Positions 15,601 through 48,800 of a stretch of 64,000 nucleotides of DNA are shown one piece after another. Each line of letters opens with the position of its first letter. Positions within the stretch are counted from its first letter, which is position 1. The stretch is taken from assembly GCF_026571515.1 (NCBI RefSeq), contig NW_026854747.1, positions 124,001-188,000 on the forward strand, read 5' to 3'. Under the pieces are notes generated by a model. It worked only from the letters and a program-made list of their open reading frames with translations. It was not told where the DNA came from and made no database searches. Both the position numbers and the translations under genes were made by a program. Source of the stretch: Ruditapes philippinarum. Taxonomy: Eukaryota.

Positions 15601-18600
15601 TCACCTTCATACACCAGATAATCTGTGTCATATTTGGAAGATGTCTGAAAACATATAAACATATGAGAATATCAGTAACACTGAATGCTGATGCTGCTTG
15701 ATGTGGCTTTAACAATGCTTAAACATTGTTCTACTAGGGGAAATAGTAGGAAAATCTACTTTTATCCTCAGTGACCTTGACCTTGACCCAATAACCTGAA
15801 ATTCTATCTGAGTGTAGATATCAACATATCAAATATTTAACATATCAGTCAGTTAATAATGCTATGAGAAATGGTGACATATATAAGACCATGGAAATTA
15901 CAAGATGGTCTACTGTAAGATGTTATACTAAATAGAGTATCACTGATACAATTAACTTTATTAACTGTGGTAAATTATGTGTGATTAACTGAAAAACTGT
16001 GGTAAAATACTTGTGATTAACTTATAAATTGTGGTAAATGACATGCCATTTACTTATAAACTGTGGTAAATATTTGTGATTAACTAATAAATAATATTGT
16101 AATCTTTTTAAACATGTGGTAAAACATTTTATACATATGTATTTTTTATATATAGATTCTGGTAAAAGTATTATCAATTTTGACTGTAGTAGGTGACAGG
16201 TGACATGTTTTGTCACTTATAAAATGTAGTTTAATACATGTACATGTGATAAACATAATGGTAAATTACCTGTAATTCAGGTGGGAATATTGGATCTTGT
16301 GTTGCATCTAGTGGCAAGAATTCTTTGGCATTAACAAGTGATGTTCCAACCTGTAAAAAATATACCAAAAATTGTAAAACTAATTAACATCTACATCATC
16401 TGTTATATAATCAGAAGTGTTCTAAATTTTGTGTATTATTTTCTATTTGACATGCTAGTGAGTACATAAATACTTATTATGTAAATGGTGGATGTAAAAA
16501 ATAGGACTTATGACAGACAAGAACTAGAAACAGACGAGAGTTGTAAACAATTAACCGATAAAACTGAGGTATTCAGGCGTGAAGTAGTTGCAATAATAAA
16601 TCTTTCTATGTATCTCAACAAATTAGCCAGTTTGTAAGCTACACTTAATTAAATCATTATTATCTTTCTCTCACTACTTTACATTGAATTCACAGACATT
16701 TACTTTACATTAATTTATGATGTAATTAAGCTTTTGTTAATCTCACAGCATGTGTTGCACTAACATGTCATAGTTTTCTCGTATGTGATATAGTATTTTA
16801 TAATGCTCATTATTTTATCCTATGTTATATTGTCAACTATGTATATGCTTCCTTTGCCGAAATAAATCTATCTATTTGGCAATTATAATATTTGTGTTAT
16901 ACTTATATAAAGATGACAGTAATATATATATTGCTGTATCTGGTGTAAAACTAAAGTACACATACATTAAAAAAGATATTTTAAGAAATTTTTCATAGCA
17001 ATTATCTATAGGCATATATTTTTTTATCCTAACCAGTTGTAAATGGAGTAAAGTTATAATTTTACCTTTATTATTCTCTACAAAATATGTAGATTTGATA
17101 AAGTGAGGGTGCAATTCTAAAAATTTTGCCCCTATAGTTATGGGAAACTCAGGGGATGAGAAAATCTTAACACACCTTATTGTAGGTCTATACCCCTGAA
17201 TTTATTTTTATACTTTTATTTATATACACATATATAAACATATTAAAATATGTTAATCAGTATAATCTATTGTTGCACTCTTCATTATAAGTCACCCAAG
17301 AAGGGTTTTCATTTTTATCTGAAGCAACAGATGTGGCTATTAAAACAACCAATTTAGCCAGGGGTCTAGGGGAGTATTTTAATCTACAGGCTAAAAATAC
17401 ACCCGATTTTAACAGTATTTTAACTGATGATATGGATTACCAATCTATTAATAATGAAAACCCTCGGACTAGGTCAGTTAACTCCTTTTATAAAAACATA
17501 TTCATGTACATCAAGTTACAAAATGTTTTCAAGGTTATTCAATTATCATAGAAATCACAAACCTTACAGCTGCAAATGTTTCATTTTATAACATAATAAA
17601 AACTATTACCAAAATATAATATTAACTTTTCTCAACAATCTGTCACACATGACCATAAATATCTAATAAGATTTTATGGTTTAAACATTAAACATCATTA
17701 AACATTTAATACATAAAATCAATATTGAAATGGTTACGATGTATTCAGCAAGTATAAACATACCCCATCCTGTGACTGGATATTGTTGTTACCATTTTTA
17801 TTCCTACAGCAGTTTTCACCCATACCACAGTACTCCTGTATATATACAATATATGAGCCGCATCATGACAAAACCAACATAGTGTGTTTGCGACCAGCAT
17901 GGATCCAGACCAGCCTGCGCATCCGCGCAGTCTGATCAGGATCCATGCTGTTCGCTTACCAACTATTTTACAAGTAGAGAAACTGATAGCGAAAAGCATG
18001 GATCCTGATCAGACTGTGCAGATGCGCAGGCTGGTCTGGATCCATGCTGGTCGCAAACGCATAACGTATGTATATATACAGTATTTCAATTATTCTACAA
18101 TTACAACATAAAATATACAACATCACATTTTAAATGCATATATGGTTATTTATATTTTTTTGATAGCTTTGAAAATCCTGCTGAGGATCTATTGTCCATC
18201 TAAAATGGGGTGGGTTGGGGGAGGCCAGGGTTTTTTGTTTGACTTACTCCAGAATTCATGAGTATTTGGGTTTTATCCAGCTAATCCGTCGGTACAAAAA
18301 AACTGTTACAGTTACAGCTTCAAAAATAAGCACAACAGGTTGACTAATCATTATCTATTGTGACAGGTAGTGTACCTTGAAAGTTTGTTTGAACCTCTGG
18401 ATTAGCTGGGAAAACCCCACTTTTGCTGAGTTCTGGATAATGTTCTATTTAATAATCAAAAGGGCTTTTGGGTCAAGTGGCTTTTGTCCAGATGGCAATG
18501 CATTAATAAAACAGTACACTGCATGTCAAGATTTGGTGTTGTAAGTGAATCAATTTCATTAGCTTGGTATTACTGTCCCTAGAAACTATATAATTATGTA

Positions 18601-21600
18601 ATTGCTAAAAATTTAAAACCAGTGAGGGTTACTAAGCATAAGAAATGTACATTTAATATACAAGAAAACAAAGTTACTGATATAACTGACCTCAAAGTTG
18701 ACAATTCTATAAAATAAATTCTCAAAGTAGAGTGGGCCATAATTCTGACATAGTATGCATCAGAGTTAAAGTTCCAGTATATTCTTGGAAAAGAATTTCA
18801 TGGAAAGGTGACATGCCAGACATCAATCTTTACCAACAGTTAAACAAGCAAACCATAATTTGCCATCCAGTATTTCTTTTAAATGAATGCATGTGTATGT
18901 TTATTTTCAGGCAATTTGAAGGGAAACCATAAAACTTATAATAACTTGAACATTCTGCATGCTATCAATAAAGTACTTGTGTTTGCTAAACACAGTGTTA
19001 CTTTACTACATACTCAATTCAACATTTTAAAGTACTTTATGATAACATTGGACAATTACAAATTTAAAGCTGAATAAGTTAATTTTCACTATTTTAGTAA
19101 GGTAATAAAGATAGTGTACCATATTTACCTTAGTAAATGTTCTGAAACCATCTAAGATAGGTCTATAACCGGTACATCTACACAAGTTACCTACAAATAC
19201 AAAATATAAAACTTGAAATATGTTTTTATCATAAGTAGCAAGAAATGTAAAAGACATAAGAATAAATATACATGCATAAAATTATCTGATATACATATTA
19301 AAGATATGATGCCTGCAGATAAAGACCAGCTTAACAAATCTTAAACAACAATATATGATTATCAACCTTTAAATACGTACAAAATCTGATATCTGTATCT
19401 GACTAGTATAAAGTCAAACAAACCTGCATGTTGGTGCAAGCTGGCCAGAATTCCAGAATTAATACATTTGGCTGATCAATTTTAGCATTTTGTTTTAAAA
19501 CTTCCTTAAACTTCCAAATCCACAGCAGGATAAGTGCATTGGGTCAAAAAGAAAAGGACAACCAACAAAAGAATAGAACTGCTTCTTCAAAAAAATAGAG
19601 AAAAACAGAATACCTAAAGTTGGCCCAAAACAACAAAATTGAAAATGTTGCAGGAGTCTGTTTATGGATGGTAATGGTAATACAGAAATGTAAGTCTATC
19701 TTATTAATGATAATTACTCGTTTGTTACCTTCAAAAGCTTTTTCCATGTGTTGAACGGTAGGTTGAGGATCATTTCGTAGCAGTGTATACATTGACATAA
19801 TAATTCCTGGTGTACAAAATCCACACTGAGATCCATGTGACTTGGCAAGCCTTTCCTGAAATAAAATATAATAATTGAGCCGCGTCATGACAAAACCAAC
19901 ATAGTGGGTTTGTGACCAGCATGGATCCAGACCAGCCTGCACATCCGCGCAGTCTTATCAGGATCCATGCTGTTCGCTATTAGTTTCTCTACTTGTTATA
20001 GGGTTTGTAAGCGAACAGCATGGATCCTGATCAGACTGCACGGATGTGCAGGCTGGTCTGGATCCATGCTGGTCGCAAACCCACTATGTTGGTTTTGTCA
20101 TGGCGCGGCTCATATCATGAACAATACTAAACTGGACAACATTAAGATTAAATCATCTCAAAGCTATCAGTTTATATAAAGTTATAAAGTATTTTTCAAA
20201 AGAAGAATGTCACAGAGACTCAGAATAGGATTTTGTGACACAATGAGGCAAAACAAGCCATGTATTTAACCCTTACTGCACTGAATATCTTAAACTTGAC
20301 TTATCCATCTTTTAATCTATATTATGCATAAATAACTGTAAACAAATATGTTGATGTTTTTCAGAACCATTTTATGTGGGAGAATAGCTTTTAGAAAGAA
20401 GGATCATTATTCAAAGACAGACACTTTTCTATGAACTCACAATTTCACTGGGATATGGATCATAGCTAAGCATGACTCAATTTCTTTTTTTTTATGCTTG
20501 GTACAAAAATGCGATTCTTTCAGTTAATTAAAAAAGTTATATGAACATTTAGTTAGAAGAATATATTAATATTTGCATGCATTATTAAGTACATTAAAAA
20601 AAATATAACAAAATGAATTTTTTTAAGTTCTAATAATTATATGAATGTACATGTATAAAAATTGGAGAGAGTAAGTTTTCATTACAGTGTTAATTTTTCT
20701 GGGTATTTTTTATGTACTATATACGTGTATAATTATTTTTTCATCTAATAAAAGTTTTGGCAGATCACATTTTTAAAAAGCAAGGAAATTTTCCTTTGTT
20801 AAAAAAAAAATCCTCCAGAAAAGTAAAAATCACAGACTAATTTTTTTGAGTCTGTTAATGAGAGATAATGGAAAGTGCAAATTCCCCCACCCCATCCTCC
20901 TTAGTATCCACACAGGTCATGATGATCTTCACTTATTTCATATACACTTGTGCATGTTGCTAAGAGCTGGCTCAACTACTTGTGCAACTGTGACTATAGT
21001 AATGAACTGGCGATTGAATGAAATGTATCATCTGAAAACTAAGATTGTCAACTTTCAGAATGTCAGCCTTCAGAACAAATGTAAAATTCTGCAATCGAAC
21101 ATAGTTAACGTGGCATAATGCGCCATTTCAATACAGTATTTGTCAAAATCAACCTGTGATATATTTAAAGAAAACTAAAAGAAACGTGATGGTTAACATC
21201 ATTTTAAGCATTTACTTTAACCAAGGGTAAGTAAGAGCATTTATTTATTTACTTGCATGAGGATAGAGATGGCCTAGAGGAAAAGGTCTGGAGTCTATTT
21301 TACAAAATTATATCAAGAGTTTGAGACATTCGAAAACCTGACCTAGAAATCATAAAAACAAACTTTCAGACCAATGATAAAAACTTAAGCAACTAGAGAA
21401 TTAACAAGTGTGACCACTACAGTGTTAACAAGTTTTTTTCATATTTGGGAGGTGTGACCTACTTTTCGACCCCCAGGTGACCCATATTCAACCTTGACCT
21501 AGATTTTATCTAAATAATCTTTCAGACCAATTTCCAGGATATTTGGACCAAAACAGTAGTCACTAGAGTGTTAACAAGATTTTTCTATTTTAAGCTCCTG

Positions 21601-24600
21601 TCACCTAGATTTTCATCAGAGATGACCCATGTTTAAACTCATCCGACAAGCATCCTAACAAATTTTGATGATGATTGAGGCAAAATCGTGACCACTAGAA
21701 TGTAAATGAACAAATGTGGATGGACAACGGACGAAAGACATTCAACGATCCTAAAAGCTCACCGTGAGCTAGCTCAGGTGAGCTAAAAGTCACTGTATGA
21801 TCTTAGATTAGCCTTTGTCACCAAGGCCAGTCTGCACATCTGTATGTATCACAAATGACAGGAATAATAATTCTGAATATATTGACATGTTTACAATGCA
21901 AGGTACCCATCAATGTAATATAATCAGACATTACAATGCATAAATTAAATAAAAATTCATGCCTAAATTGTTACAATGTACTTGTTTGCCCGAAATTATG
22001 TATGACAAGTACCAAAAACTGGCTATATGAAACAGACATCATTTGATCTTAATTTCAGTCTATAAATAACAGGAGGACAAATATAATTTAATAAGAGATT
22101 AATACACGGCAGAGTAGGGCCGGAAGGTGATAATTGGCCCGCAAAATAAATAATGGCCCCGAGGGCTGATAACTAGTTTTCGGCCCCGGGCTGCAAACTC
22201 ATAATAGGTCACGTGACACTCATAATCAGTTGAACTCATAGGCAATTTTGTTACTATATATAGTAACAAGTGTATTAATATCAGCTTTTTATTGAAAGAA
22301 ATGTATTATAAATATATTAATTGTGCTGCAGAATCATTACATTTAATAAATTAATTTCATTCTTATTGAAAGAAGAAAATAAAAACAAACAAATAGATGG
22401 TTAATCTATTTTTATATATTGTGACTCACAGTTCTCTGTAAATGACTTGCCATGTAGGTACTGCTGTTGTTTTTACAAATATTCACTGTTTATATATTTT
22501 AATGCTCATGTTTGTATCATGTATGATGCACTGAGAGAAAAGTAAAGAATTTGAATCTATACTTGGTATAATATGATGGTGTTTAAACACAGCACTTTGA
22601 TATATAATTGAGTGTTGGAAACGCCTGTAATTAGATACTGAAGGGATTCAGTAATTATAAGTATTAATACAATATTGTTTAACCATTCTTTTAAAGCTAG
22701 TAGTGTAATATAACAAACACATGTCATCAGATCAGAGTAAATCTATCATTATTATCATTATTACTAATTTATTATTGTTTGCATTAAACCATTGTTGTTC
22801 ACTCTCCATCTCTACATGGAACTTAATGCTATATAACAAATTCTATATCATTTGTTGAATATAAGCGTGACATCTTACAGTTTACGTATTTATATTGTAG
22901 TGATACTGTAATAAGGATGATAAAATAAAATATATCTTATGAAAAATTGAAGCAAATAATCATTAACATCACTTAAAATAAATTGAAACTTTAATATATT
23001 TTCATAATTTTGCTAATTTTCGCATTTGTAAAAAGTATCTTTAAGTGAACAATTCTGCAGCATGGAATAAGCAGCATGGAATAAAATTTAAGTGTTTTTA
23101 GAGCTGTATCAATTTCTTCCCTTGTTACACCCAACATACCCGAGGCATTCTTGTTTTGAAACAGTTTACACTCTTTCCACTTTCCAGTAATGATGTGTAT
23201 ATGAGTACAAAATATTATACTAGAATAAGAATTAGCATGTTAGAATATCAAACAAAACAAAAGACGAACTAAAGAATATTCCCTTCGTACAATCCTGGCA
23301 AGTTCGGTTAAAACAAGACTTTTGATTTTTAAGAAGAAAGTTTTATAACTTTACTATATAATCTATCTAACAGATGCGGGTATTACAGCACATGCACTTG
23401 TGCAGACACACAGGTGAATTGCTATATGCCACTGCACTGTAAATGCAGAGGTGAAATAAAAATGCAGCATGTTACACAATGACAAACAGATACCTTTACA
23501 AAGACAATGTACACAGAAAGCTTGAAATGCAATATCAATGCTTCATATTTATTCCCATGTCAATTACCTGAACTGGATGAAGACCTTTCTTAATACTGCC
23601 TATACCTTCTACAGTTGTTACTGCCAGTCCATGCATGGAACATAGTGGTGCTAGACAGGCATTCACAGAGGAATGACTGAAAATATCATATACCATGTAA
23701 ATATACTTAAATTATATATCTCACGGGGTAAATCAAGTCATGATGAAACATAACAATGCGGCATAAATCTAACTGCACTGGATGATGAAGACCAAAATTG
23801 CCCCTAAATACTTTATTTTATGTCTCCACGGTTTGATGATACGTGATGAATTATAACTCCAAAAGTATCATTAATGTATATGTATGTGAATATGACTTAT
23901 TATCTTAAAATTTAAAGTATGATATGGTGAGGGTCCCTGGTTTGAGTCTCGGTCTGATAGCACATTTTCCTCACTATGAAATATTATTATCATATATGCA
24001 CCTGTAATGATATCTGTAGATACAACATAACGAAATGAACTTAATTTTAACTTCTACATCATCTAACATTTTCCTGTTTTCTGGTATCACAAAATACATT
24101 CTACTTTCATTATAAAGCAAAAACATTTTCCAGATTATGCACTATCCATATTAATTTCTTTTCTTGTGTTTTTGTTACCTAGCAACCAGTGTTAATGGTA
24201 ATCTCTCCACTAAATATGACAAAATTAACAAATTTATGTTACATAAAGGATATTATTATTGTCTAAAACATTTCAAGTTTGTAACACAATACAAATCAGT
24301 GATTTTCCCTGCATACTATACAGCCTTTTACAAGCTATTTCCCTAAGCCAAATTTAAAGGACTTTTTCCCCTAGCCAAATGGCTGTTACCCCTAGCTAAA
24401 AAGATATATTTTTTCCTCAAAAATGCAGTCGTTATTGGTTTAAAAAAAAAGAAAAGTTCTGTTACTTTAGCCTTTAACTTTAAACCCCCCTCCCCCCCAA
24501 GAAAGTACATTGTTTCACGTATATATGTGGTAAAGGGTTAATGAACTTCACAGGACAATTCACTATAAAAGAAGAACAAAGAATAAAAAAATATTAAAGT

Positions 24601-27600
24601 GTTAAAAAAAATAAGAATTATCTATTCTACTTGCTAGAGTTAAGGACCAGTCTGGAGTTTGCTAGTGTTGTGGACCAGTCTGGATTTTGCTAGTGTTGTG
24701 GACCAGTCTGGGCTTTTGCTAGTGTGGCAGGCCAGTCTGGGATTTTGCTAGTGTTGCTGACCAGTCTGGGATTTTGCTAGTGTTGTGGACCAGTCTGGGA
24801 TTTTGCTAGTGTTGCAGACCAGTCTTGGATTTTGCTAGTGTTGTGGACCAGTCTGGTATTTTGCTAGTGCTGCATACCTGTCTGGGATTTTGCTAGTGTT
24901 GCAGGCCAGTCTGGTATTTTGCTAGTGTTGCAGATCAGTCTGGGATTTTGATTGTGTTGTGGACCAGTCTGGGATTTTGCTAGTGTTGCGGACCAGTCTG
25001 GGATTTTGCTAGTGTTGCAGACCAGTCTGGGATTTTGCTAGTGTTGCGGACCAGTCTGGGATTTTGCTAGTGTTGCAGACCAGTCTGGGATTTTGCTAGT
25101 TGTTGTGGACCAGTCTGGTATTTTGCTAGTGTTGCAGACCAGTCTGTGATTTGGCTAGTGTTGCGGGCCATTCTGGTATTTTGCTAGTGTTTCAAGGCCA
25201 GTCTGGGATTTTGCTAGAGTGGCAGGCCAGTCTAGGATTTTGCTATTGTTGCGTGCCAGTCTAGGATTTTGCTAGTGTTGTGGACCAGTCTAGTATTTTG
25301 CTAGTGTTGTGGACCAGTCTGGCATTTTGCCAATCTCCTACGCAGTGATCTCCCCTTATCAGTACAGAGATCTCTGCCATCACAAACATTGAAATATCAA
25401 TATTTGGATATTTATATTTTTTAGCTTTTTAATTAATTTTTCATTATTTTATATACTTTTGATAATTTTTTGATAAAATATAACGGACGTAGGTACAAAA
25501 AGTTAAAAATAAAACAGAAAGAGAAAAATGACGTTAGATTTTCTATGTAACGGTCGATATTTACATTTGAATTTCGACGTTACGTCATGTGACTTTCATC
25601 ATCATGTGACGTCTGTGAAGGCAGTGATTACAATTCTGCCAAGGGAGGTAATCAGTGTGAGGAGTTTGGCATTTTGCTAGTGTTGCAGACCAGTCTGTGA
25701 TTTGGCTAGTGTTGCATGCCATTCTGGTATTTTGCTAGTGTTGCAGACCAGTCCGGGATTTTTCTACTGTTGCTGACCAGTCTGAAATTTTGCTAGTGCT
25801 GCAGACCAGTCTGGGATTTTGCTAGTGCTGCGGACTACTCTGGATTTTGCTAGTGTTGTGGACCAATCTGGAATTCTGCTAGTGTTGCAAACCAGTCTGG
25901 TATTTTGCTAGTGTTGCGGACCAGTCTGTGATTTTGCTAGTCTTGGGGACCAGTCTGGGATATAGTAAGCTTTCAGTCAAATTCATAGGTTGGATTTTAA
26001 TTCCCAAAAACAATGCAATGGTCATGTGGTGATTTTTCAGTCATATTAAGATTTGTACTTAACAAGTGATTCTAGATTGTTATACAAAAATTAGTGTGTA
26101 CCCTTTAAAATGAATTTGTCTATAATGGGCAAATTTTCATTTAATTAAGTATTTCAAATATCCTTCAAGGATTATACAGTCAGTATGAATCAGCATTGAA
26201 ATTATTCTTAAAATCTCAATGTAATTGGTATATTTAATGATTTAGGATAAATTAATTCCTTATTGAAATTTTTGTGGTAAGAAACAAGTAAATGAATGTG
26301 TCTAAAAGAATTTTTGCATGTAAAAAGTTTCCAAGAAAATAACAATAATGATACTAATTTCTTTTAGATAAATTATCTGTCTTATATTATAGTTTCAAGG
26401 TAAACATAGGAATATATCACTGATATAAATAACTTAGGCTGACAGAAAGTTGGTAATTTTCTAGACTTATCTTTTGAGAGAAAAGTAACATTTAAAGTAC
26501 AACATTTATATACACACCATATTTTCTTGTTGGAGTGGTCAAACTTGGATACCATCACAGTACATGCACCACAACCTCCTTCTCCACATCCTAGCTTTGT
26601 ACCTGTCAAACCCACTATAACAATGTGTCAAGGAAAACGTAAATGCAAAATTAGATTTATTTTGGATGCATTAATTTAAATGTAACACAAGTTTTATGGC
26701 AAGTATGGTGATAAATTTAGAGAAAAAATGCACCATTCTGTACAATATTTATACTTGAGAAGGTTAGCAAACAGAGCCTTGGCCAAGGTTGCAGTACACT
26801 CAGCTGCCTTGTGATTACATACCAAAATACAGACTTGTATACAAGATCAGTGAGGAACCCCCCACAACATAAAGTAACAAGTAAAGACTCCTATTATACC
26901 TATTATGTGAAATAACTTCTACTCCATTTCAACATGTGTTACATTTATTTTTATTATTATTATATTAATACATATATACATACAAGTCATTGTATGTATA
27001 ATGAACATAAAATATATTTCAAGAAACAACATGTGTTCCAAAATATTGTAAACTTGACCATTGTCATCATACTAAAGATTACACCAATAAATGAAGCTAT
27101 CACAGTATACCAAGAAAATTGTTGTTTCCGTGTATGAAAACATGGCTCTTAGGATGAAAAAAGGTTTACAGCCAACTCCAGACTTTTAAACCATATTCTC
27201 CCACATCAATCAATGAGTGACCACAGATATATCATATACATGTATTATGGGAAACATACATTAATTTCTAAAGTACAAATGTTAAGTAAAATATTCAATT
27301 TGCATAATAACATCTTATACTCAAGTTACATGAAAATTTCAAGTTATTTCCTGACAAAACCATCTGGTATGACATTTGTGTATTATACTCATGAAATTAT
27401 GAAGCATGAATCTTTATAACAATGTTATTTTGAGACATAGCTTTCCATATTTGTACTAATCATCATACTAAGGGTTGAAAAATTTGAATGCTTGCAAAAT
27501 TTTCCAAATAAAATATGTTTAAACTAATATGGCAATAATCCCGGTTTTGCATGAAATAAAATATAACATCAAGGTTTTGATATTAATTTTTTTTATGGTG

Positions 27601-30600
27601 GTGTGAGTGTGTGTGAGGGGGGTGGGGGGAGGCAAGAATGAGTAATATTCCTAACATTCTCTGGAATATGCAGTAACCCTTGTCAACATTTTCCTGGATC
27701 CGCGCCAGCATTATCACAGTATCATAATATTAATATGTAAGTTCAAAAATATCTCTTTCTATAAATAGAAATAATAATGTAAAGAATGAAGACTGTATAT
27801 TTAGCAAATTTCATATAATTATGTCATCCTAAGCTGTATAATAATGTATGTTCTGTTTTTGCATGTAGGTCATTTAAGACAAAAAGAAATGCTAGATTTT
27901 TTTAAATAAAAACGAAAGTGCTCATTTGTAACAAATGCGTTTCACCAATGCCCAAACCATTGAAAGAGAAAATTTACATTAAAATTCATGATGACTAAAC
28001 ATCAATGCTTTCATTTTATTTTCTTATCTGACCTTGAACCTCTGCATGTGATCTTGAGACCTGAATTTTGCCCACATTATAACACTACATTTTACAATGT
28101 TACACATTTGTGCAAAAAACATGTTAAAGTTTTGCTTTGCAATAGAATTTTCCTCTGACCTCTAAGTGTGACCTTGATCTTTGACCTATAGAGACTTTGA
28201 TCAATATGTTTCATGGTCAGAACAAATTATATCAAGTGAAACAATGAAAAATTCCATCCATGCAAGTAGACGATAAGCTCTGTCAAAATCTGAACATTTC
28301 ATCATCTCTGGTGACCTTGATCTTGCATATATTGACCTAAATTATGTTGAAAAGAAGTTTTATTCCAGACAAGCATTTTTCTTAAACCTCTCATGTGACC
28401 TTGACCTATGACCTAGAAACCTGGTTCATATGATTTAAAAAAGGTCTTATGGTGCTCAATGAAGTCTGGAGTTGCCCACGTTTAAGTTACAGAACATTGT
28501 AGGTGGTATTAAGTGACTATGAACTTATAATGAAAAATAAAAGTCATCTCTTCTACAAGGACATTTCACTCAATTATTTGGCTAATATGTTTTATCATTA
28601 AAGGACACAGTGACCTTAACCTTTTATCATTACAATGCTCTTCTACAAAAAAGGTAGATATCCTATGAAGTCTGAATTAGGCTGTTCGTCAGACAGTATA
28701 TTAAATGAAAGAGAAACAGAGCAGAAGCAGTATTTTTATAAATAAAATAAATAAATCAAAATCTTTTCATTAATGAAACTGATATCAAGTCTTAAATCTT
28801 TGTAAAAGATATGGCAAATTAAACTTAACTCACAATGAACTAACGCAAGTCATAAACTATTTACATGTATGCTATACCAGACAATCATGTCATATGATAA
28901 AAATGAACACCATGAAATCTAAGTACATATTTTATGATTGAAGAACCAGATCAGGTTATTGTGTGTTTGTTAATGTGTTTTATGCGAATAACAATATATC
29001 AAATTTATGACAAGAAATATGGAGGTATGTAAAAGTTTCGAAATTGACTGTCATACTACTACAATATACTGTAATCTGTGGCGTAGCTGCCTATATGTCG
29101 TATAAACCATGGTCCATAGTTTTTTACAGGAATATGAAAAAGATAAAAATCATTTACTTGTTGATCTGCATTCATTATTAAATTATTCCTTAAAAATTTA
29201 TCTTGTACTAAATATATGTTAAAATACTTTTCCAACACTCCATGCAGAGCAAAAAATATTATACCACTAGAACCCCCAAAAATTTGGCCTACACATAACT
29301 TTGAACCAAGCCTTGCCCTTGTTAATACCCACAGTATATAAAATCAAAGATAAATGTTACAAGTATATTATTAATATAATTATTATAGAAACTTGTTTAG
29401 AAAAGTAAATTTTATTTTTCTATGAGCATAAACTTGAGGACATAACCGCACAAAACCACTTCAATTTTCACCTACGTAATGTTAGGGCCCAGTTACACAG
29501 ACGGTCGGTACCCAATCAGTCATTTAATTTTAAATTTACTCGCTGTTATGATCGGTTGTCATGCGTGATTTTATTTCTGGTTTTCTGTGTAAACGGCCAT
29601 CGGTGACAAAAAGCAAATTCAAACATGTGGGGTCGATGATTAAATGCTGAAATACTTTTGGTTTTTATCGTTTGTAAATCGGAGCTAAATCGGGCGTAAC
29701 GCTGATTAATCGGTGTTTGATAGCTAGTCATCAGTGGTTAAACACTTTCCGTCAGATATGGCCGGTGATTCATATTTGGTTATCTTTGTCCGATCGGCGA
29801 TATCGGTGATTAAGAGCTTGCACATCTCGTGGTAAAGGTTGCCGTCGGTTATTTTTAAAATATTTTCACTGATCGAGAATTTTAAACGTGTTTGAAAATC
29901 CCAATCGGTAATTTTTAACCGATGAAACTTATCTTTCCCCAATATCAGTTGATAGGTGGAAAACAGGTGACCAATAGGTGATATCGGTGATAAATACGTT
30001 GTCATCGGTTCACTCCATAATTTGACTAAAAAAACTACCGATCAATCACCGATGGCTCTGTGTAACTGGGGTGTTACTTCTTCAGAAAAAGGTATCTTTG
30101 ATAGACATACAGTCCATGTAAAGACAGAAGTTGTTGGTTTAACCTAACAATTAATTACTGTGAAGCAGAATATAAAACAAATAAAATAAAAAAAAAATTA
30201 TTGGTGTAATTAAAAATTATGAATATAAACTACAAGTTTGTAAATCTACAAGTTAAGGATACAATTCTGTCTGAGATATTGCAGTAAAGTTGTTTCAGGC
30301 TCAGCATTCTTCTCCACAATCTGCCAAAAAAAATAAAGTCAACATTATAAGTTATGATCCACAACAAGTTTCATAAAACTTAAATCAACTGTAAATAAAG
30401 TAGTTCACTCTATAGCATAATTTTGTTCCTGCAACATAATTTGACTGTGACACAGTATTAGCTCATATAACATTGAATAACCATGACAAGGCATGTCCAT
30501 ACAACATTAATTGACTATGACACAGTATTATTTCATATAACATTGAATAACCATGACATAGCATGTCCATACAACATAAATTGACTATGACACAGTATTA

Positions 30601-33376: not shown

Positions 33377-33824
33377 TATTGTGTTTTGTAAATATACAAC
33401 AATTATTTACGTTATTTTCCTAATCCATGCTCTTTCTAGCTTTGCACAATAAATGAGGTATGACACTCCGTGCAATGCTATAAAGTAGATAACTTCAGCA
33501 AAGTGTGACAACAAGTAAAATTAAACCTTGGGACTGTTTGTCCAACTGATAACAACTTCTTTATAGAGGCGATATTTTTGAGATAGTATGGTAATAAAAG
33601 TAGGTCAATGCCGGTGACAGATTTTCCCTATTCTAAAAATAAGCTTAATCGCATTGGTCAATCCCCCTACAAATTTTTCTACCTTCGTTTGAAGAGTTTA
33701 TGTCAAAAACGTTTCTATTGGACAAATTAATTCGGTCGTCCAATGAAAATCATTGTTTTATAAATGTAGTTTTACAACACGGCAAAGATTTTTTTTTAAC
33801 AAAAATAATAATCTTTCATTTTAG
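33377..33824. promoter_or_regulatory. Putative bidirectional promoter between XDH and ZnT6
   Basis: 448 bp between divergent ATGs; CCAAT/ATTGG boxes at 33653, 33717 and 33740. Confidence 0.55.
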
Positions 33825-33888
33825 ATGGCAAATTATGGCTCTGTTCCAGACCTTATAAGCAGTAGTGTTTCAGTAGATATTGGAAAAG
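33825..33888 (+). CDS. SLC30A6: ZnT6 putative first coding exon
   Basis: MANYGSVPDLISSSVSVDIGK+G|gtaatc, phase 1, matches the next exon; no homology support recognised. Confidence 0.6.
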
Positions 33889-36800: not shown

Positions 36801-39800
36801 GTTTACCAAAACACCTGTGCTGTGCAAAATTTAATATGCCCATCATGTAACAACGGCATAGTTTTAAATTAAGCATACACGGTTATGCATTGATTGATTA
36901 AAAATATTGAAGATAATTTTATTTCACTTCTATTAATGACAGCTCTAAGCATGGTATAATTATGGTAGACTGATTACATTCTACATTATATCTGAGACAG
37001 TATGTCTTTGTCCCAGCAACAGGTTGAATATCATTAGGAGATAAATGTTAGTTATTAGTTTCTCACATTGAATATTAACCTTAGAAAGGGATAAATGTCT
37101 AAGAGGTCAAGGTTAAATAAGTGTTTCCAATTTTAACTTTTAGTCAGATTCTTAGCCCTTAAGTTAACCTGTTGCATTTGTATATTAGATTTGACTAGCT
37201 TTAAATTTGGAGAATCCATTATAATTTAAAAGGATTAGAATATCAAAATACAATATAATTGTGCTAGCAGCAGCCTGGATCCAGGTGAGATTACTCAGAT
37301 ATGTAGACTGGCCTCTAGCCTTGCTCTATACTGGTGGCACAGGTTAATTAAGTTTGGTTTCAGCAGTCTAGGGGTTAGAACTTAGACATGTATATGTCAA
37401 TTATTTGATATGGTGCAACTTATCTTATTTTTGTGTTGAATTACATTATTTTTGTTTACATTTCAGGACACAATTTATCCATTTGTCAGTCCCCAGAAAT
37501 CATTCATCCGGTCATTTACTGCAGCCTTTCATTCTATACTACGCCTAAAAGAGGTAAAATCGAATGTCACGCTTTACTTTTGTTGATTTTTTTTTTACAT
37601 TATAGCTAAAGTAGTTTTCGACATGATTGAATTATGGGTTTTGATTCAAGATTTTTTTTTCTGGGAAATTGATTATGAGAAAACAAAAAAAATTCTGCTT
37701 GAGAGAAGATATAAATAGTATTGTTGTTTTTATTTAACCCTTTTGGGAAAGAGTAAGATGTGTCCACCAAAGAAAAATTTAGAATAAACAAATCTGTTTT
37801 TAATCGTCTTGATTTGTGAAAAGATCAAGTTGCAGTAACAGCCAAGTTTTTGAATTTCAACACAAATAAGTAAAATAGGATATAGAAATTGTAAGTGATT
37901 GGGTGATCTTTCTTTAGAAGAGAGAAGATAAACATATTTAATGATCATGATTATTTCAGACAAAGAAGATTCTGGTTTTCTTAGCCCTTAATGTGGTTGG
38001 CACGGCAACTTTGTTGATATGGTGTCATGACACCAACAGCATGGGTAATTGTTTATATTTTTATCACATACCTTTGTAGCTATTACGACTACCTAAAAAT
38101 GGTACGGGACAGCTGTATATGTGTTTTCATGTGACATAATTTGTGTTACATAAACATAGCATAAAAATGCACTTAGTTTTAGCATTACACTATTAAATGT
38201 CAACGAAAAAATGATTATTCTATCGACAAAAAATTGTTTTTTTTAATGTACTATGTAATATAAAGAATATTGTACTCTTGTTGTTCATTATTTAAGTTAT
38301 TGAACTTGTTAAATAAATTATATGCTTGTAATATTCAGTATTTAACCATAACTCATTCAATAGTGTGTATATGTAAAATTAACTCCCTTTTGCAGCTCAC
38401 AAGACAATATGAAATTAATATACATTATATATAAGAAGAATATACTGCAGGAAATATTTATACTGTACAACAGATATAGAGCCTTTTGTAAGGCAAAGAC
38501 TTAAGACTATCTGATGTCATTAAATTTCAAAAAAGGGCAGCAAGAATACTCCTTGACAAAAACTTTGATACACCATCAAGTGAATTATTCAAAGAATTAA
38601 ACTGGATGTCTTTTGACCAAAGAATCATATACAAAAAGTCAATTCTTATGTATAAATCAATTAATGAACCTGACTTTCCAACATATATGAAAAATAAATT
38701 CCAGACAGTAAACGAAAGGCACAACTTAAACCTCAGATCAGCACAAAATGCAAAGCTAATTATACCAAAACCTAAAACAGAATTCTTCAGAAAATCATTT
38801 GCATACTCTGGACCAAAAATATGGAATAACATACCAGTACATATAAGAAATTCCGATACTCTTCGGAAATTTCAATCAGCTTATATCAAATGGCAGTTTT
38901 CACCTTAAACTAGCTGTTGATTTATTCCTGTTGTATAAATTACTTATATGTACTTTTATTATTACTATATTACTATTGTTATCGTTTCTTTTACTTTTGC
39001 CCCATATTTTCCCAATAGGAAAATTTATGATTCAATGATGCCAAATGATGATTTCCTACTCCAATTGAACTTAAATTTATGTATATATATAGATATATTT
39101 TAGTTATATTTTAAAATAACTCATGAGCCAATATGTATTAGATAATAATATCACTTAAATTATCATCTGAATTTCCATGGTGTATTTTTAATTATAAATA
39201 TTGTTTTAAATGTGTACTAAATATTGTTTTAAACAGGTACTATGTTAGTTTTACCTATCTGTACATATTGCTCTTTTTCTCTGTATTATTGTACAATCAT
39301 TTCATTTTTTGCTTTATCAATCATTACTTCAATTTAATTGATCTGTTTTAATAATATTAAATTTTGTGTATATATGTTGTGTATATGTTGTGTACATGTA
39401 AACTGATTGTAATAATGTTATGCTGAGGCCCACATGGAAGATCGGGAAACTGAATGTGTAAGCCTCGTTAAATAAAGTCGTTACTTACTTACTTACTTAC
39501 TTACTTTAGTAGTTGCTGAAGAAATACTCTAGAAAGTTAAATTTATTCAACAGGGCCCCGATGTTACAATATTTCAGGTTGAAATCCTCTCTCATACATT
39601 GATAACAAGTTTTGTCATATCTGGAAAGAAAAAAATCCCTCTCCCAAGCCCAAAAAAAAAATAAAAATTAAAAAAAAAATCGATAGAATTTTGCTGTCTC
39701 CAAGATCTATTAAACATAACATAAAGTTTTTGCATATACACAAAGTTGCTTAATAATTATTTCAGTTAGTTTGTTAACCCTACAAGCTACAAATTAAACT

Positions 39801-42800
39801 GCTACATGGATACATGTTTTGTGTTTTACTTTTTAGCTTTGACAGCCTATACCTACCTGACTTTATTTGACATCTTTAGGTAAGTATGTTTTACATACCA
39901 TTTACTAGTATTCTTTATTGGTTTGTAAAATGTGGTTGTTCAGTACATGTTATTCACAACACAGCTTGAGTGCATCTGGTTATAGTACTTGGATTTCCAA
40001 ACATGTGATCATTTCAAAATAAGGCAACTTTCCACCAACATATTTACTTATTTGTCAGGCAAATCAGAGCCATATGGATATTGATATATGGAGAGAGAAC
40101 AGTATATTTCTGTTTTCTAATGATGAATGTAATTAACATTAGTGACATGTGTTGCAATAAAATACTGTTGAATAAAATATTTTGATAAATAATGGTTATA
40201 GCAAAGTAAATGTGATTTTCTGCAAAAACATCTTTTCAACTTGAGAACATTTCAATTTTATTTTTTTTGGACAGCTATAGTCACACTTCAGCTTAAACCT
40301 TTTATAAATTGTATATGCTAAATACCACTAAAACGACTAGTATGTAATTTGACTGTTTACTGCTGCATGTACTCACTGACATATCAGCATGCAAATGTGT
40401 TTATACTGTACTCCAGCTCTAATGTTTTACTGGTTACCATTGACTGTCATACTGACATGGCTGAAAACAATTGCTTTACTGGTTATCAGGACTTCAAGTG
40501 CCTTAAACTTTTATAATGATTTGATTAAAAGCAATTTATGAACATGTCTTATGCCATTCCATGTAAGTTTACCTCTGTTTATTCTATTGAATCATAGTAT
40601 GTGAAGAAGTTGTTATTAGCTTGCAGAGAAAATGTTAAAATAGATAAAAAAAATCCCAAGTGAAAGCCCAACACAGAGCAAAACTAAAAATGTTGCAGAC
40701 TCAATTTGAGTGAGCCTGTTCATGGATGGTAGTGGTATTTGCTTTGATTGAGGAACAAAAACTAGTAGATGTAATTTCAAACATAAAGATAATAAATATC
40801 TCTACAAGAAATTGGTGACAATAAAGATATTGTCACTTGTATCTTAAACAACTAATGCATGTTGATTTCAGACATTTTATCACATTGCCTCATCCAGTTA
40901 AATATGTTTAATTTTTTCCATGTTCCATGGTTCTGATTTCAGTTTGTTGACATGTCTACTGAGTATTTGGATTAGACTACAAAAACCATCACCGGCATAT
41001 TCGTTCGGGTAAGATTGGTCATGTAATTAAATTATTTTTTAAATTGTCAAGACTACAAACTTTTAGCTAGCCATCACACAGGCACACTTTTTTGTATGTT
41101 TCCAGTGTGATAGTTTGTGCTCTCTCTACATGACATTTATAAAGGGCATCCTCGTGGCAACTTGAGTTGTTCCCAACTAGATCATGCAGCGTCAATGGTG
41201 TTTCCATTGTGTCCCAGGTTGCCTTGGGAATGCTTTAAGGTTGCAATTCTTGTTTCATAGACAGGGTTATAACAGAACTACAAATTACATAACTTCTGCA
41301 TTAAACACTAGTCTTGCCTTGGTTACTCAGAAAATGTTCATCGACAATGTTTTTTTTTTTTTAAGTTTGTAAACATACCTGTAGATTATGTTTGTAATTA
41401 CTATAAGTTATGTAACTTTTATTTCATTTACAGGTATGAGAGATTTGAGGTTTTAGCAACATTTGCTAGTACAATGTTAGCACAATTAGGTGCTTTATTT
41501 ATCATCAAAGAAAGGTAATTATATCTGTTTTAATTAGTCAATTAAATCTTATAGTGATTGTAATAATTTTGACTAATCATATGATGTCAGGATACATCCA
41601 GTCAGCCGCTTCTTCAATGCAGATAACCAGAATCTGTACAATATATTTTTAGCTGCTTAAGTTTTTCTTTTCATGCCCCCATCTCTACCAGGCTGTGGGG
41701 GATGGGAGGGGCATTTAAATTTGCCCTTGTCTGTCCATGTGTTCTCCTGTTGTGTTGCATGTAGCTCTAAAAGTGCTTGAGCTAGAGTCAACAAACTTTA
41801 CAGTTATGTTGATCAGCATTTGAAGTTGTGCACCTGGGCTTTTGCATGTTGATTAATTCAGTTTTGTCAGAGTAATAATATCTGTCATATTTTGCAGTTC
41901 GGATCGGAATATCCGTCCCGAGGTGACCCGCCCATTGGGCGGTAACGAGGCTTGCCGAGTTACCGCCCATGGGCGGGTGACCGAGGGACGGATATTCCGA
42001 TCCGAACCGCAAACATATGTCAGATATTTTTTCTTGCATATTCTACCATATTCCATTATATTTTAAATTCTTTATCTTTATTTCAATGAAAAATTTATAT
42101 CATTACAACCGTAACTACTTTCATTCAACAGCGTATGAATTACAAAATCATTCATAACGGTAAAATGACGTCATCGTTATCGTGCCATTGTACAGCACGC
42201 GACTCATCTGGAACCCCCCATGCCAGATGACATTTCCGGCATGGGTAAAACTAACGGAAACGCCAGTCTGATATGCAAGAATTATTGCCCCTGACTTAGT
42301 AAAAATTGACAGTTTCCAATTTGTGTTGCAAAACGCTGAAAAAAAATTAACCTTGAGTCATGAAAGTTTAACGAATGTTGGTCAGCATGTGTAGTTGTGC
42401 ACCAGGGGGTTTGCTTGTCGATTTATCAGTATTTGTAGAGTTTTTGCCCTTGACTTAGTAAAAAATGCAATTTTTGATTTGTGTCCCGCATAGCTGAAAA
42501 AGTAATTGACCTGGAATCATGAAACTTTACAGACATGTTGGTCAGCATGTTAAAGTGTGCATCTGGGAGTTGTTTGTGTATTTATTCATTAATTTGTACA
42601 GTTATTGCCCTCTACAGGAATAATGTGTATTTCTATTTTATTGTTTATATGTTATCATATAGGAATTATATATATTTCATATTATTTACAGCATAGAGAG
42701 ACTTATACAGCAACCAGAGATACACACGTAAGTTAAAAAAAAACACAAAAAAAACGTTTTGTCATTTGTTATTTTATAAACGTCAATTTTTTCTGAAGAA

Positions 42801-45800
42801 GACTAAACGTCGAAAGCTTAAGAAAAGCGTTTGTTATACCCCCAAAAACGAAGTTTGGGGGGGTATATAGGAGTCACCCGGTGGTCGGTTGGTCGGTCGG
42901 TCGGGCGGTCGGTCGGTCGGTCCAGACGTCCGTTGCATTTTCCTTGTCCGGACCATAACTTGAAGACTAATGGTTGGAATTCAATATAACAACATACAAT
43001 GGTCTAGCACATTGAGAGGAAGTGCAGTGCACAAGAACCATAACTCTATCTTGACTAATTACAGAGTTATTGCCCTTTGTTACTTTTCCTTGTCCGGGGC
43101 ATAACTTGAAAACTACTGGTTGGAATTCAAAACAATTTCATACAATTGTCAAACACAATAAGGGGAAGTGCAGTGCACAAGAACAATAACTCTATCTAAA
43201 GTAATTACAGAGTTATTGCCCTTTGTTACTTTTCCATTGCTTTCTTTTGTCCGGACCATAACTTGAAGACTAATAGTTGGAATTCAATATAACTACATAC
43301 AATGGTCAAGCACATTGAGAGGAAGTGCAGTGCACAAGAACCATAACTCTATCTTGACTAATTACAGAGTTATTGCCCTTTGTTACTTTTCCTTGTCCGG
43401 GGCATAACTTGAACACTACAGGTTGGAATTCAAAACAACTTCATACAATTGTCAAACACAATAAGGGGAAGTGCAGTGCACAAGAACCATAACTCTATCT
43501 AAAGTAATTACAGAGTTATTGCCCTTTGTTACTTTTCCATTGCTTTCTTTTGTCCGGACCATAACTTGAAGACTAATGGTTGGAATTCAATATAACTACA
43601 TACAATGGTCTAGCACATTGAGAGGAAGTGCAGTGCACAAGAACCATAACTCTGTCTTGACTAATTACAGAGTTATTGCCCTTTGTTACTTTTCCTTGTC
43701 CGGGGCATAACTTGAAAATTACTGGTTGGAATTCAAAAACAACTTCATACAATTGTCAAACACAGTAAGGGGAAGTGCAGTGCATAAGAACCATAACTCT
43801 ATCTAAAGTAATTACAGAGTTATTGCCCTTTGTTACTTTTCCATTGCTTTCTTTTGTCCGGAGTATAACTTGAAGACTAATTGTTGGAATTCATTATAAC
43901 TTCATACAATGGTCAAGCACATTGAGAGGAAGTGCAGTGCACAAGAACCATAACTCCATCTTGACTAATTACAGAGTTACTCCCCTTTGTTACTTTTCCA
44001 TTGCTTTTTTTGTCCGGAGTATAACTTGAAGACTAATGGTTGGAATTCAATATAACTTCATACAATGGTCAAGCACATTGAGAGAAAGTGCAGTGCACAA
44101 GAACCATAACTCCATCTTGACAAATTACAGAGTTATTGCCCTTTGTTACTTTTCCTTGTCCAGAGCATAACTTGAAAACTACTGTTTGGAATTCAATACA
44201 ACTTCATACAGTTGTCAAGGACATTAAAAGGAAGTGCAGTGCATAAGAGCCATAACTCCATTTTGACAAAATACAGAGTTACTGCCCTTTGATACTTTTC
44301 CTTGTCTGGAGCATAACTTAAAACGTATTGGTTGAAATTCAAAACAACTTCATACAATGGTCAAGCACAAAAAGAGGGAGGAAGTGCAGTGCACAAGAAC
44401 TATAACTCCATCTTCAGTATTTATAGTTATTGCCCTTTGTTCCTTTTCTTTGTATTTCTGGACTTATTACAGAGTAATTCGATAAAACTTCTTCAATGGT
44501 CAACCACATTGAAAGGAAATGCAATATACAAGAACCACAACTATCTTTAATTGCTCACAACCATAACTCTATATTTCAATTCTTTTACAAGGTATTCTGT
44601 TACTAGTAACATCCTCATTTCCGAAGCAGTCTTGTGGGGGTATTAATCACATTTAGTGATAGTTCTAGTTTTTATTGAACTGATTATACACGTAAGTTAA
44701 CAAATTACATTTCATTGATACATTTACATAATGTACATTGTCTATCGATAAGCTTTATTTTAAATTAGGTTGGTATTTTCACAAATTCATGCTTAAACAC
44801 ACATTATGTCTCAGAAACAAATAAATTTTTACTTCTTTAGAAAGGACAGACATTTTTAATGTTTTTAGCTCGACTTTTCTATGAAAAGGGGAGCTATCCT
44901 ACTCGCCCCGGCGTCGGCGTCGGCGTCACACCTTGGTTAAGTTTTTCGTACCACCCCACTTTATTTCAGAAGTATTACAAGTATGGCTTTGAAACTTACC
45001 ATACTTGTTCACCATCATAACCTCCATCTACAGACAAGAGTACATAACTCTGTCAAGGTTTTTGACAGAATTATGGCCCTTTTTTGACTTAGAAAGTGTA
45101 TTGAGCTTGGTTAAGTTTTTTGTACCACCTCACTTTATTTCAAAACCATTGGAGGTATTGCTTTGAAACTGACCATACTTGTTTACCATCACGACCTTCA
45201 TCAACAGACAAGAGGACATAACTCTGTCAAGGTTTTTGACAGAATTATGCCCCTTTTTGACTTAGAAAATACATTGAATATGGGGTAAAATCCACTTATT
45301 GCCTTAACCCTTTGAGATATTGCTTTGAAACTTTTAATGCTATTTCACATCATTACCCCCATCTGTACGCAAGAGAAGGTAACTCTGTCAAGGATTTGTT
45401 TTTAAAAATTAAGGCCTTTTATCGACTTAGAATCTTGGTTAAGTTTTTAGTACCAGTCCACTTTTTGACTGAACTGTTTGAGATATTAATTTGAAAGTTG
45501 GAATACTTGTTTACAATCATGATTCCCAAACATGTCCAGGAGAAGGTAATTCTGTCAAAGATTTTATTTGAATTATGGCCCTTAACTGTCAATGTTTTGT
45601 ATTATAGGCAAGCACTAAAAAACTTAAAAAATCTAAAAAAATTCATTCCTATCCACTTGTTCACTTTACCATAAATTATGTCATATAAACATTGCTGTAA
45701 TATTCAAGGGTATCAAACAACTAGTTCACTTTAAAAATACAGAGATTCTTGTATTGCCTTTTACTGCAAAAACTTTTTTTATTGGCAAGCAATAAAAAAG

Positions 45801-48800
45801 TCGAGCGCGCTGTCTTACGGACAGCTCTTGTTAGAGACTGTTAGATGCTTGTTAACCTGAAGAAAGTCATGAAAAATGTGAAATAGTTTGTCATAAAAGT
45901 AGGAAAATGTAAATAAAGTATTTTTTTGACTTCCATACAAAATACTAATTCATTATAAGTGTACTTGTTGCCAAAAAGCAACAGATAAAAAAGATTGTTC
46001 TCATTTGCCAATGGGAACATTTTTTATACTATAAAAGTATTACAAAATAAAAAAACTTTTGAGAAAATATTAATACAGTTTTGTCAAGGTGGATTTATTT
46101 GAAATATTTTGGGTTATCTAGAGGCATGCAAAATTAGCAAAATTAAGGTCACTCTCTGAGTCAATGTATATGAGCCGCGTCACGACAAAACCAACATAGT
46201 GCGTTTGCGACCAGCATGGATCCAGACCAGCCTGCGCATCCGCGCAGTCTGATCAGGATCCATGCTGTTCGCTTACAGCATGGTCGTTGGTTTTGTCGTG
46301 ACACGGCTCATACAGTTTTAATGTTGGATTTTATATTTCAGAGGTCGACTATTGGTAGGGGTTATGTTTGCTTTCATACTTCACATGTTTCTAGTATACA
46401 GTGTAGATAATAAAGCTTTAAATCATGTGATGAGAGCATCTAGTTCAAGTTGGTTACAGGAACATACAACAGATATCAGTGAAAGGTACTCAATTATATA
46501 CATGTATATATAAAAAAGTTTGATTCCTTGTGTGGATCTAATGTATAAAAAATAATTTTATGGGAAATGCAGAAAATAAATATTGTTCATTTTTTTGTAT
46601 GTTTAATTCTGTTAGAGATTTCAATGGTGTACACATATCTTCAGGCAGTAACATATGATAATTATTATATGTTACATATATCACATACCACAAATATCAG
46701 TGAAACTTAGTCATTTATAATTTATAAGACAAGCTGTGTCTTTGTTTATGAAATTATATATATCAGTGAAAGGTAGTCAGTAGAATGTTGTTTTTTCTCA
46801 CAAAAATGGACCTTGCTTAATGAGTTTATAGATTTACGTAAAAGACGTCAGTTTTATTATATATTGCATATCATAGATAAAATAATATAGATATATTTAA
46901 CAGATGGAATATATCACAAAACATTCTCCTTTGTTGGTTACTTTAAAGATATCATGAAAGGAAAGAAATAAATATATCTATAAATCTAAACCTTTGCAAC
47001 GGGTTATAAAAATTTCATTGGAAGACTTTACATAGTTAAATGTATGACATTCACGTGTTTGATTTGTTATTATTATCATTACTTTATACTATAATGATAG
47101 GAAAAAAAGCTAAATGTCAGTTTATGCCATTTAAATGTTGAGTAATATTATTTTATTGGCAACAATATTGTTTGGGGTTTTCCCTATTTGACATGGAGGA
47201 AAGGATATATTTGAGCCGCGTCATGACAAAATCAACGTAATGCGTTTGCGACCAGCATGGATCCAGACCAGCCTGCGCATCCGCGCAGTCTGATCAGGAT
47301 CCATGCTGTTCGCTATCAGTTTCTCTACTTGTAATAGGGTTTGTAAGCGAACAGCATGGATCCTGATCAGACTGCGCGGATGCGCAGGCTGGTCTGGATC
47401 CATGCTGGTCGCAAACCCATTATGTTGGTTTTGTCGTGACGCGGCTCATTTTATATTTTCAGTTTATGCTACCTAATACCAGGTTTAAGCAAGTTGTTAT
47501 TACCACGGATCAACCCACTGGCCCTGATAGCTTTTGCTGGAGGCTTTATGCTTACAATAACACATGTTCTTATTGATACAAAGTGAGTATATTAACATGT
47601 TATTTAGGTCATAACGTAATAACATGTCAATGTAGTAAAGTACCAGTGTGCTGTATAAACAATATTAATATGTCAATGCAGTTAAGAAGCAGGTCATGCT
47701 GTGCATCAATGCAGTTTGGCAAGGCTCTATAATGTTTGTTGGCCAATTTTCAAGTTGGAAAATGCAACAGGATAAATGTTACAGTAAAATAACAATATTT
47801 GTTTGCCTTTTCCTGAACCTCTATCAATAATTATAATGTTTGTTGAAAGCTTTAGTTTATATTCATCAATTTATTTATTAACAAAAGGGCCTGTATGCAC
47901 CTCACTGTGTAAAAGATTTACACGTACAACTAGCTGTCCAGATGTTACTGGACTGGTTGTAATTGAGTGCCTGTTTGCACCTGAAATAATGCATAAAGGA
48001 ACACCTGAGGTCTCCCTCCACCAGTCAAGCTGTAAAGTCACTATATGACCTGTACATTGTAACTTGAAACACTAAAGAACACTTGCTAAGAAAAACCAAA
48101 TTACTAGATAGTCTCATCACATTAAAAGATTTTCTGCTTTTTGCAAGATTTGAAAAGAGTTCAATAAATCTTAACATTTCCAATTATATTCAGATGTAAA
48201 AAAATCCCTTAACAAAGCAGCAGTAAAAACTGCTTACATTCTGTGCAAGACTGGTCCTATATACACGGTTGTTTGCATATATTACCCAGGCCACTAGGCG
48301 GGGGTTATATTTCACACAGTCTTTACATAAGTAAGGTCATACATTGTATAACCTGTCAAACAAATTTATGATACAGTATACTTCTTTTACTTGAGAAAAA
48401 ATTGAAATTACTTAATAAATTGAGAGTATCCATGTATCATTATATAGCTTATATAAATGTCAGGTTTATCCAACGAAAAGTGACGTTACAAACATGCAGT
48501 ATTATATTATTTACAGGAGTTATTTTTCATCTGACACATTGGCAGCCATGATGATAGCTGTGATGACATGTGGTACAATGTTTCCTATGGCTGTCTATAC
48601 TGGCAAAATACTTCTACAGGTAATATTTACTTCAAAATACTTCTACAGGTAATATTTACTTCGAAATACTTCTACAGGTAATATTTACTTCGAAATACTT
48701 CTACAGGTAATATTTACTTTATAATACTTCTACAGGTAATATTAACTTCGAAATACTTCAACAGGTAATATTTACTTTGAATTACTTCTACAGGTAATAT

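Follow-up and report, generated by a model that had tools for sequence, protein, structure and literature searches.

Copies of a palindromic MITE immediately upstream of splice acceptors in XDH and ZnT6 of Ruditapes philippinarum, and a weak acceptor-side bias of its family

Intronic transposable elements (TEs) of mammals are under-represented near exons (Zhang, Romanish & Mager 2011, PMC3088655). Introners, by origin short elements derived from DNA transposons, are tied closely to splice sites (PMC11282704). Stowaway-type MITEs (miniature inverted-repeat transposable elements), which derive from Tc1/mariner, are small and non-coding, carry terminal inverted repeats, reach very high copy numbers, generate an AT-rich 2-bp duplication, have a strong potential to form hairpins and are frequent in introns. 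In this study, we analyzed a palindromic MITE in a 64,000-nt stretch of the Ruditapes philippinarum genome (RefSeq assembly GCF_026571515.1, contig NW_026854747.1, positions 124,001 to 188,000; hereafter the window, numbered from its first letter). The element resembles the Stowaway-type MITEs in all of these features, and it resembles introners in being a short DNA-transposon-derived element close to splice sites. Its four copies inside two genes of the window, XDH and ZnT6, all end just upstream of a splice acceptor. Across the genome a weak acceptor-side bias of the family exists: a few percent of approximately 15,000 copies lie within ~50 nt of an intron's 3' end, approximately 4–10 times as many as random insertion would place there.

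Five copies of the MITE were found in the window by blastn, four of them intragenic, and this search of the 64 kb showed no further fragments. The heptamer CGGCTCA, which marks the element ends, occurs nine times in the window versus 0.8 expected. A full copy is 237 bp long and consists of two 103-nt arms, 96% complementary to each other, with a 31-nt loop between them and a smaller palindrome nested within each arm; its termini read TGAGCCGCG...CGCGGCTCA. Read in the direction of the host gene (XDH on the minus strand, ZnT6 on the plus strand), the terminal A of the four intragenic copies lies at -19, -21, -32 and -15 relative to the acceptor, exactly as the original prediction had it. Its estimate that the acceptor zones make up ~3% of intron length also holds (37 x 35 nt of ~40 kb). 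Both host genes are exon-dense, and after adjustment for their exon density the probability of four of four under uniform insertion is 7e-7.

The four acceptors rest on different kinds of evidence. An RNA-seq contig splices 46382-46485 to 47463-47582 and then on to later ZnT6 exons; because it joins 46485 to 47463, the acceptor of ZnT6 exon 10, 15 nt from the full-length copy c4, is in use. This shows that the insertion of c4 is tolerated and that the adjoining acceptor is correctly used in RNA. XDH exons 5-6-7-8 form a single reading frame across canonical GT-AG junctions. The acceptor of XDH exon 7 is assigned from frame and consensus, and that of ZnT6 exon 9 from an open frame and consensus; if the next AG (46344) were the acceptor of the latter exon, the distance to c3 would be -34. 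The XDH exon 7 peptide, which is short, had no match in Pfam or PDB, and PDB searches with the short exon peptides of 24 and 47 amino acids were likewise without a match. The host introns are 0.98–1.3 kb or longer.

We then turn from the window to the family as a whole. In the 1.41-Gb assembly (32% GC), the exact 20-mer at the MITE end occurs 29,784 times (14,976 + 14,808), and therefore at least ~14,900 copies are present. Hexamers were counted at set gaps outward of these 29,784 anchored ends as exact genome-wide patterns. TTTCAG, an acceptor hexamer with the exon lying outward, was counted 662 times at a gap of 12–42 nt, 625 times at 43–73 nt, 468 times at 112–142 nt and 479 times at 212–242 nt. 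The second of these values becomes ~545 after allowing for a repeated composite flank, to which ~16% of the rows listed (those sharing gap 72) belong. The reverse complement CTGAAA was counted 466 times at 12–42 nt. In that zone a second acceptor hexamer, TTACAG, gave 548 occurrences versus 435 for its reverse complement CTGTAA. Two composition controls, compared at 12–42 and 112–142 nt, gave 1046 and 1152 (TTTCAA) and 308 and 314 (GACTTT). At 12–48 nt from the ends, acceptor hexamers thus outnumber their reverse complements by 1.26–1.42x, and the pooled counts are 1210 versus 901, with a Poisson z of 6.7 that overstates the true z owing to repeated flanks. The acceptor excess is motif- and strand-specific. 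It is even across -19 to -49 and probably persists at -50 to -80. TTTCAGG at a gap of 2–11 nt stands at 2x baseline, but this zone overlaps the T-rich target site. Copy c2 of the window is itself among the genome-wide TTTCAGG matches (C3234:143855-143895).

With the share of TTTCAG and TTACAG among the acceptors of the window (13/21) used to convert the excess into copies, about 450–500 copies (3–3.4%) end 19–49 nt upstream of an acceptor. Uniform insertion would place 0.3–0.8% there, which corresponds to an enrichment of about 4–10-fold, given an assumed 150,000–350,000 introns. The acceptor targeting that had been predicted for the element stands in so far as a strand-specific excess exists while the controls are flat, but it concerns only about 3–3.5% of the copies and not most of the intragenic ones. 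As to the predicted enrichment at -15 to -35 beyond composition, a simple position weight matrix (PWM) of the target site falls short of the hexamer excess (see below), but the excess is small and spreads past that zone, and the share of TTTCAG followed by G does not rise near the element.

Our tentative reading, to which we give a little less than an even chance, is that the four of four in the window come from the extreme tail of an acceptor-side bias of the family that is real though weak, noticed after the fact, and not a family rule. An enrichment of 3x would raise the probability of four of four to 3.5e-5, one of 6x to 3e-4 and one of 10x to 1.2e-3, so that the pattern has a probability of about 1e-4 to 1e-3 under this reading. 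Heterogeneity between genes or subfamilies may also play a part. Mechanistically, integration would favour AT- and T-rich, probably nucleosome-poor DNA such as that at the head of the polypyrimidine tract. In the pre-mRNA, the MITE would then fold into a stem of ~110 bp that includes a few flank bases, and this stem could draw the acceptor back towards the upstream intron, where the branch point may lie, and hide the internal AGs of the element.

The target site was read from a flank sample of 166 distinct ends (~83 copies, 1.5-kb flanks). Flank positions 1–2 are WW at 160 of the 166 ends: TA at 61 (37%), AA at 44 (27%), TT at 43 (26%) and AT at 12 (7%). Counted outward, position 1 is T in 64% of the ends, position 3 is T in 95% and position 4 is a purine; T accounts for 40–61% at positions 5–17, and the baseline is reached again from ~18. 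The left and right flanks of the first 30 full copies are mostly a matching direct repeat. The target of the MITE is A/WW/T in an A-rich/T-rich, roughly palindromic site. Its duplication can be read either as 2-bp WW or as 4-bp AWWT with element ends GAGCC...GGCTC, and the data fit both equally; if it is 4 bp long, the host site provides the terminal A. Terminal inverted repeats, a target duplication, a non-coding length of 237 bp and a high copy number were all found, and 40 full copies are 95–100% identical, the best copies being 95–97% identical to c4, whereas the strict TA duplication of Tc1/mariner and Stowaway elements is present at only 61 of the 166 ends. The element is a conventional high-copy, non-autonomous cut-and-paste DNA transposon, namely a MITE.

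Beyond the T-rich target, the flanks of the MITE are locally more complex DNA: A/T-only hexamers are 20–25% rarer 12–74 nt from the element than 100–700 nt away, at equal base composition (~160 ends). Two pairs of sampled copies, L002/L005 and L006/L007 (the latter 31 kb apart on contig C1919), have identical outward flanks and represent duplicated segments or nested repeats, not independent insertions. Other flanks are shared at a fixed distance, with TTTCAG exactly 72 nt past the end in one such flank and another reading TATCTTTTTGTAGAAAACCACTTAC. Because many copies share identical flanks, the MITE is also carried within larger repeated units or segmental duplications, and the genome-wide hexamer counts are over-dispersed for this reason.

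Several results weigh against the reading of a real but weak bias with the window in its tail. The Poisson z-scores are optimistic, as repeated flanks over-disperse the hexamer lists, and the fold enrichment hinges on the assumed number of introns and on the genic fraction of the copies. If genuine acceptors made up all of the excess, G should follow TTTCAG more often near the element; it did so in 19.9% of cases near versus 22.6% far, with a small calibration (3/9 in the window). In the flank sample, calls combining an acceptor, an open frame and a donor were made at 8.4% of the 166 ends versus 5.9% of matched controls, which is not a significant difference. Even at 6–10x enrichment, the probability of four of four is still ~3e-4 to 1e-3. 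A mechanism through sequence preference is not demonstrated, because a 20-nt two-sided logo gives the acceptor zones of the window 3.3x the mean genic weight with a bootstrap confidence interval of 1.0–6.4 and a median of 1.1 (donor zones, 0.9). Furthermore, AWWT control sites weighted by a 12-nt PWM (~31,000 sites, effective n ~3,260) contain TTTCAG at 0.014 per site versus 0.022 observed, and CTGAAA at 0.017 per site. Since these controls fall short of 0.022, a simple mononucleotide preference is insufficient for the excess. Longer-range features, such as T tracts, DNA shape or nucleosome exclusion, or chromatin would be possible causes.

Further tests on the sampled copies gave no acceptor signal. 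A crude acceptor matrix, which scores the true acceptors of the window at 1.0–6.1, found acceptor-like sites 8–45 nt outward of 17.5% of the 166 real ends and of 17.1% of PWM-matched AWWT controls, and the mean GC and open-frame profiles of the flanks are without an exon signal. Among the ~83 sampled copies, only one (L029) adjoins a plausible acceptor exon: it lies in a long intron, and a cadherin-like exon begins 14 nt past its end. The flat GC and open-frame profiles, together with these sample tests, exclude the idea that most intragenic copies abut acceptors or exons.

These null tests at the level of the sample, together with the lack of a rise in the G(+1) share, are what would be expected if no real acceptor preference existed and the hexamer excess were an artefact of repeated flanks or context, the window being a coincidence with ascertainment. 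Some counts are visibly inflated by repeated flanks, and the pattern was singled out post hoc among hundreds of windows of the genome. On the other hand, the strand-specific excess recurs in two independent acceptor hexamers, and four controls are flat. The 100 near-zone TTTCAG flanks listed, many with long T tracts, are nearly all different and show no spike of gap length that a repeated flank would leave. The window itself has p ~7e-7 under uniform insertion. We regard pure coincidence as quite unlikely. Base composition as the whole explanation is ruled out by the flat TTTCAA and GACTTT counts and by the PWM-weighted control sites.

The failure of the simple target PWM to predict the excess would also fit a filter that acts after insertion. 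Copies would then insert approximately uniformly, and those adjoining acceptors would outlast the others, whether through the purging of deletions at such sites or through a mild benefit of these copies; the limitation of the enrichment to ~50–80 nt from the exon agrees with this. Yet the copies tested are young (perfect 20-nt ends, ~95% identical), and have had little time to be lost at different rates, an insert that separates the branch point from the acceptor would more likely do harm than good, and the TEs of mammals show a depletion close to exons (PMC3088655). We find such filtering improbable as the source of the excess.

A preference for exon flanks as such would have a similar, low probability. 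In this case nucleosomes positioned on exons would guide integration into linker DNA within ~50 nt of both splice sites, and an excess on the donor side is predicted as well. The antisense donor hexamer ACTTAC was indeed counted 397 times near the ends versus 282 times far from them, GTAAGT near the ends amounting to 284 and ACTTAC being back at baseline (276) at 43–73 nt, and two sampled copies lie 36–38 nt downstream of Pfam-verified exons (DLIC, E=1e-15, and TMEM219, E=1e-7). However, 12 of 100 ACTTAC rows listed share gap 19 and represent one repeated flank (~48 events). The second donor hexamer gave no excess (ACTCAC 113 versus GTGAGT 128), and the pooled donor side is 463 versus 412, or ~1.1x, which is not significant. 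All four intragenic copies of the window, moreover, lie on the acceptor side.

An introner model, in which the element would supply the intron itself, was rejected. The pattern of a donor hexamer, the 237-bp element and an acceptor hexamer has four matches genome-wide, which is the chance level; the host introns are at least 977 nt long, and the L029 copy is without an exon within 300 nt upstream.

A stronger form of the acceptor-side bias deserves separate mention. The family, or its transposase, may truly prefer the last ~50 nt of introns several-fold over matched DNA, with the perfect hairpin hiding the insertions from the spliceosome; we consider this doubtful, although more than a bare conjecture.

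The original prediction went further in one direction, proposing that the MITE may be tolerated because it supplies a branch point. In the form assessed here, insertion would be aimed at the branch-point window, and use of the terminal CTCAT as branch point would make the element tolerated or favoured. All four copies do lie at -15 to -32, each with CTCAT or CTCAA, and only 14 nt separate c4 from the AG, so that the branch point could conceivably fall inside the element or at its end. The genome-wide excess, in contrast, is even over -19 to -49 and beyond, and it involves only ~3% of copies. The match to YTNAY is nearly uninformative, since most 30-nt stretches would contain the motif by chance. 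CTCAT arises at the end because the target preference puts T after A, T being the first flank base in 64% of the ends, and the terminal A may equally be part of the AWWT target duplication. A role of the terminal A as branch point is thus unsupported, and we hold targeting of this kind to be very improbable.

The other half of the proposal, that the palindrome would form an RNA stem of ~100 bp, agrees with structure prediction. As RNA, c4 with its flanks is predicted to fold into a single hairpin of -233 kcal/mol, as compared with -90 ± 5 for shuffled sequences (z = -27), and the predicted stem runs 6–8 bp into the flanking intron. In this model the terminal GGCTCA is paired with TGAGCC. Because the terminus would be base-paired, looping out and offering the terminal A are competing and not joint functions of the element. 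On our reading, splicing does not require the element to donate a branch point, and loop-out by the hairpin is plausible as the more economical account of tolerance.

RNA reads of run X22 cover 46171-46310 and 47212-47448 at a depth of ~10,000–30,000x, versus 1–4x on neighbouring exons. Joints between opposite strands are many among them. The reads on the element stem from all genomic copies, with template-switch artefacts of the hairpin in addition. A>G changes in these reads showed no excess over other changes. No DNA contig bridging an empty site was seen, reads on the element being swamped by all genomic copies.

The coordinates of the MITE copies in the window and of the host exons are collected in Table 1. 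The only copy outside both genes, c5, has acceptor-like outward flanks on both sides (ccgcag at 16 nt and ttttcag at 26 nt from the element), and a coding exon could be verified on neither flank.

Table 1 MITE copies in the window and the host exons next to the intragenic copies (positions in the window).
Feature	Position	Strand	State or acceptor	Location	Basis
MITE copy c1	17854-18067		left end intact, right end truncated	3' end of XDH intron 6	blastn, sequence, inverted repeat
MITE copy c2	19876-20112		full length, 237 bp	3' end of XDH intron 4	blastn, sequence, inverted repeat
MITE copy c3	46171-46310		internal deletion	3' end of ZnT6 intron 8	blastn, sequence
MITE copy c4	47212-47448		full length	3' end of ZnT6 intron 9 (977 nt)	blastn, sequence, inverted repeat, RNA fold
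MITE copy c5	63692-63890		internal deletion	outside both genes	blastn, sequence
XDH exon 7	17764..17835	-	acag/GAGTAC; c1 terminal A (17854) at -19		frame continuity exons 6-7-8
XDH exon 5	19729..19855	-	tttcag/GAAAGG; c2 terminal A (19876) at -21		Pfam Fer2_2 E=2e-13
ZnT6 exon 9	46342..46485	+	tttcag/AGG; c3 terminal A (46310) at -32		RNA contig covers 46382-46485
ZnT6 exon 10	47463..47582	+	ttttcag/TTT; c4 terminal A (47448) at -15		spliced RNA contig

Other repeats are present in the window. A repeat resembling a short interspersed element (SINE) occupies 14917-15178 of an XDH intron, and the exon that starts at 14905 follows ~12 nt downstream; the repeat has a conserved 3' end (...AAATTCTGTATAAACCA), and the 300 kb of DNA sampled contain six to seven relatives. 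As a control TE family it offers too little power, its exact 17-mer anchor having 19 matches. A second palindromic MITE-like element, unrelated to the first, occupies ~41880-42026 in a ZnT6 intron, with 48-nt arms that are 90% complementary. A longer repeat at 44860-45700 contains internal tandem units of ~170 bp and has relatives of 94–97% identity at the sampled loci L007 and L036.

Few insertions are normally as damaging to an intron as one that falls between its branch point and its acceptor. If the MITE is enriched several-fold at this position with correct splicing, integration can be biased to acceptor-proximal DNA, and a long perfect RNA hairpin could neutralise an insertion of 237 nt between branch point and acceptor. 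The riskiest part of the intron would then be a safe harbour, through a splice-acceptor-proximal targeting that is the opposite of the depletion at mammalian exon flanks. If the bias consists of composition and chance only, the window is an instructive outlier.

Our search of the literature found no description of an acceptor-proximal excess for MITEs. Compared with Stowaway, the present MITE differs in that TA occupies only 37% of the ends (AA/TT 53%, AT 7%) and in that the whole element is one palindrome. Unlike introners, it lies inside pre-existing introns. In yeast, a hairpin between the branch point and the acceptor has been proposed to shorten the effective distance, and the MITE would be predicted to form such a stem; the yeast stems are short and native, whereas that of the MITE is a predicted, transposon-borne stem of ~110 bp. 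In contrast to the mammalian TEs with their underrepresentation zones, this MITE family is in modest excess just upstream of acceptors.

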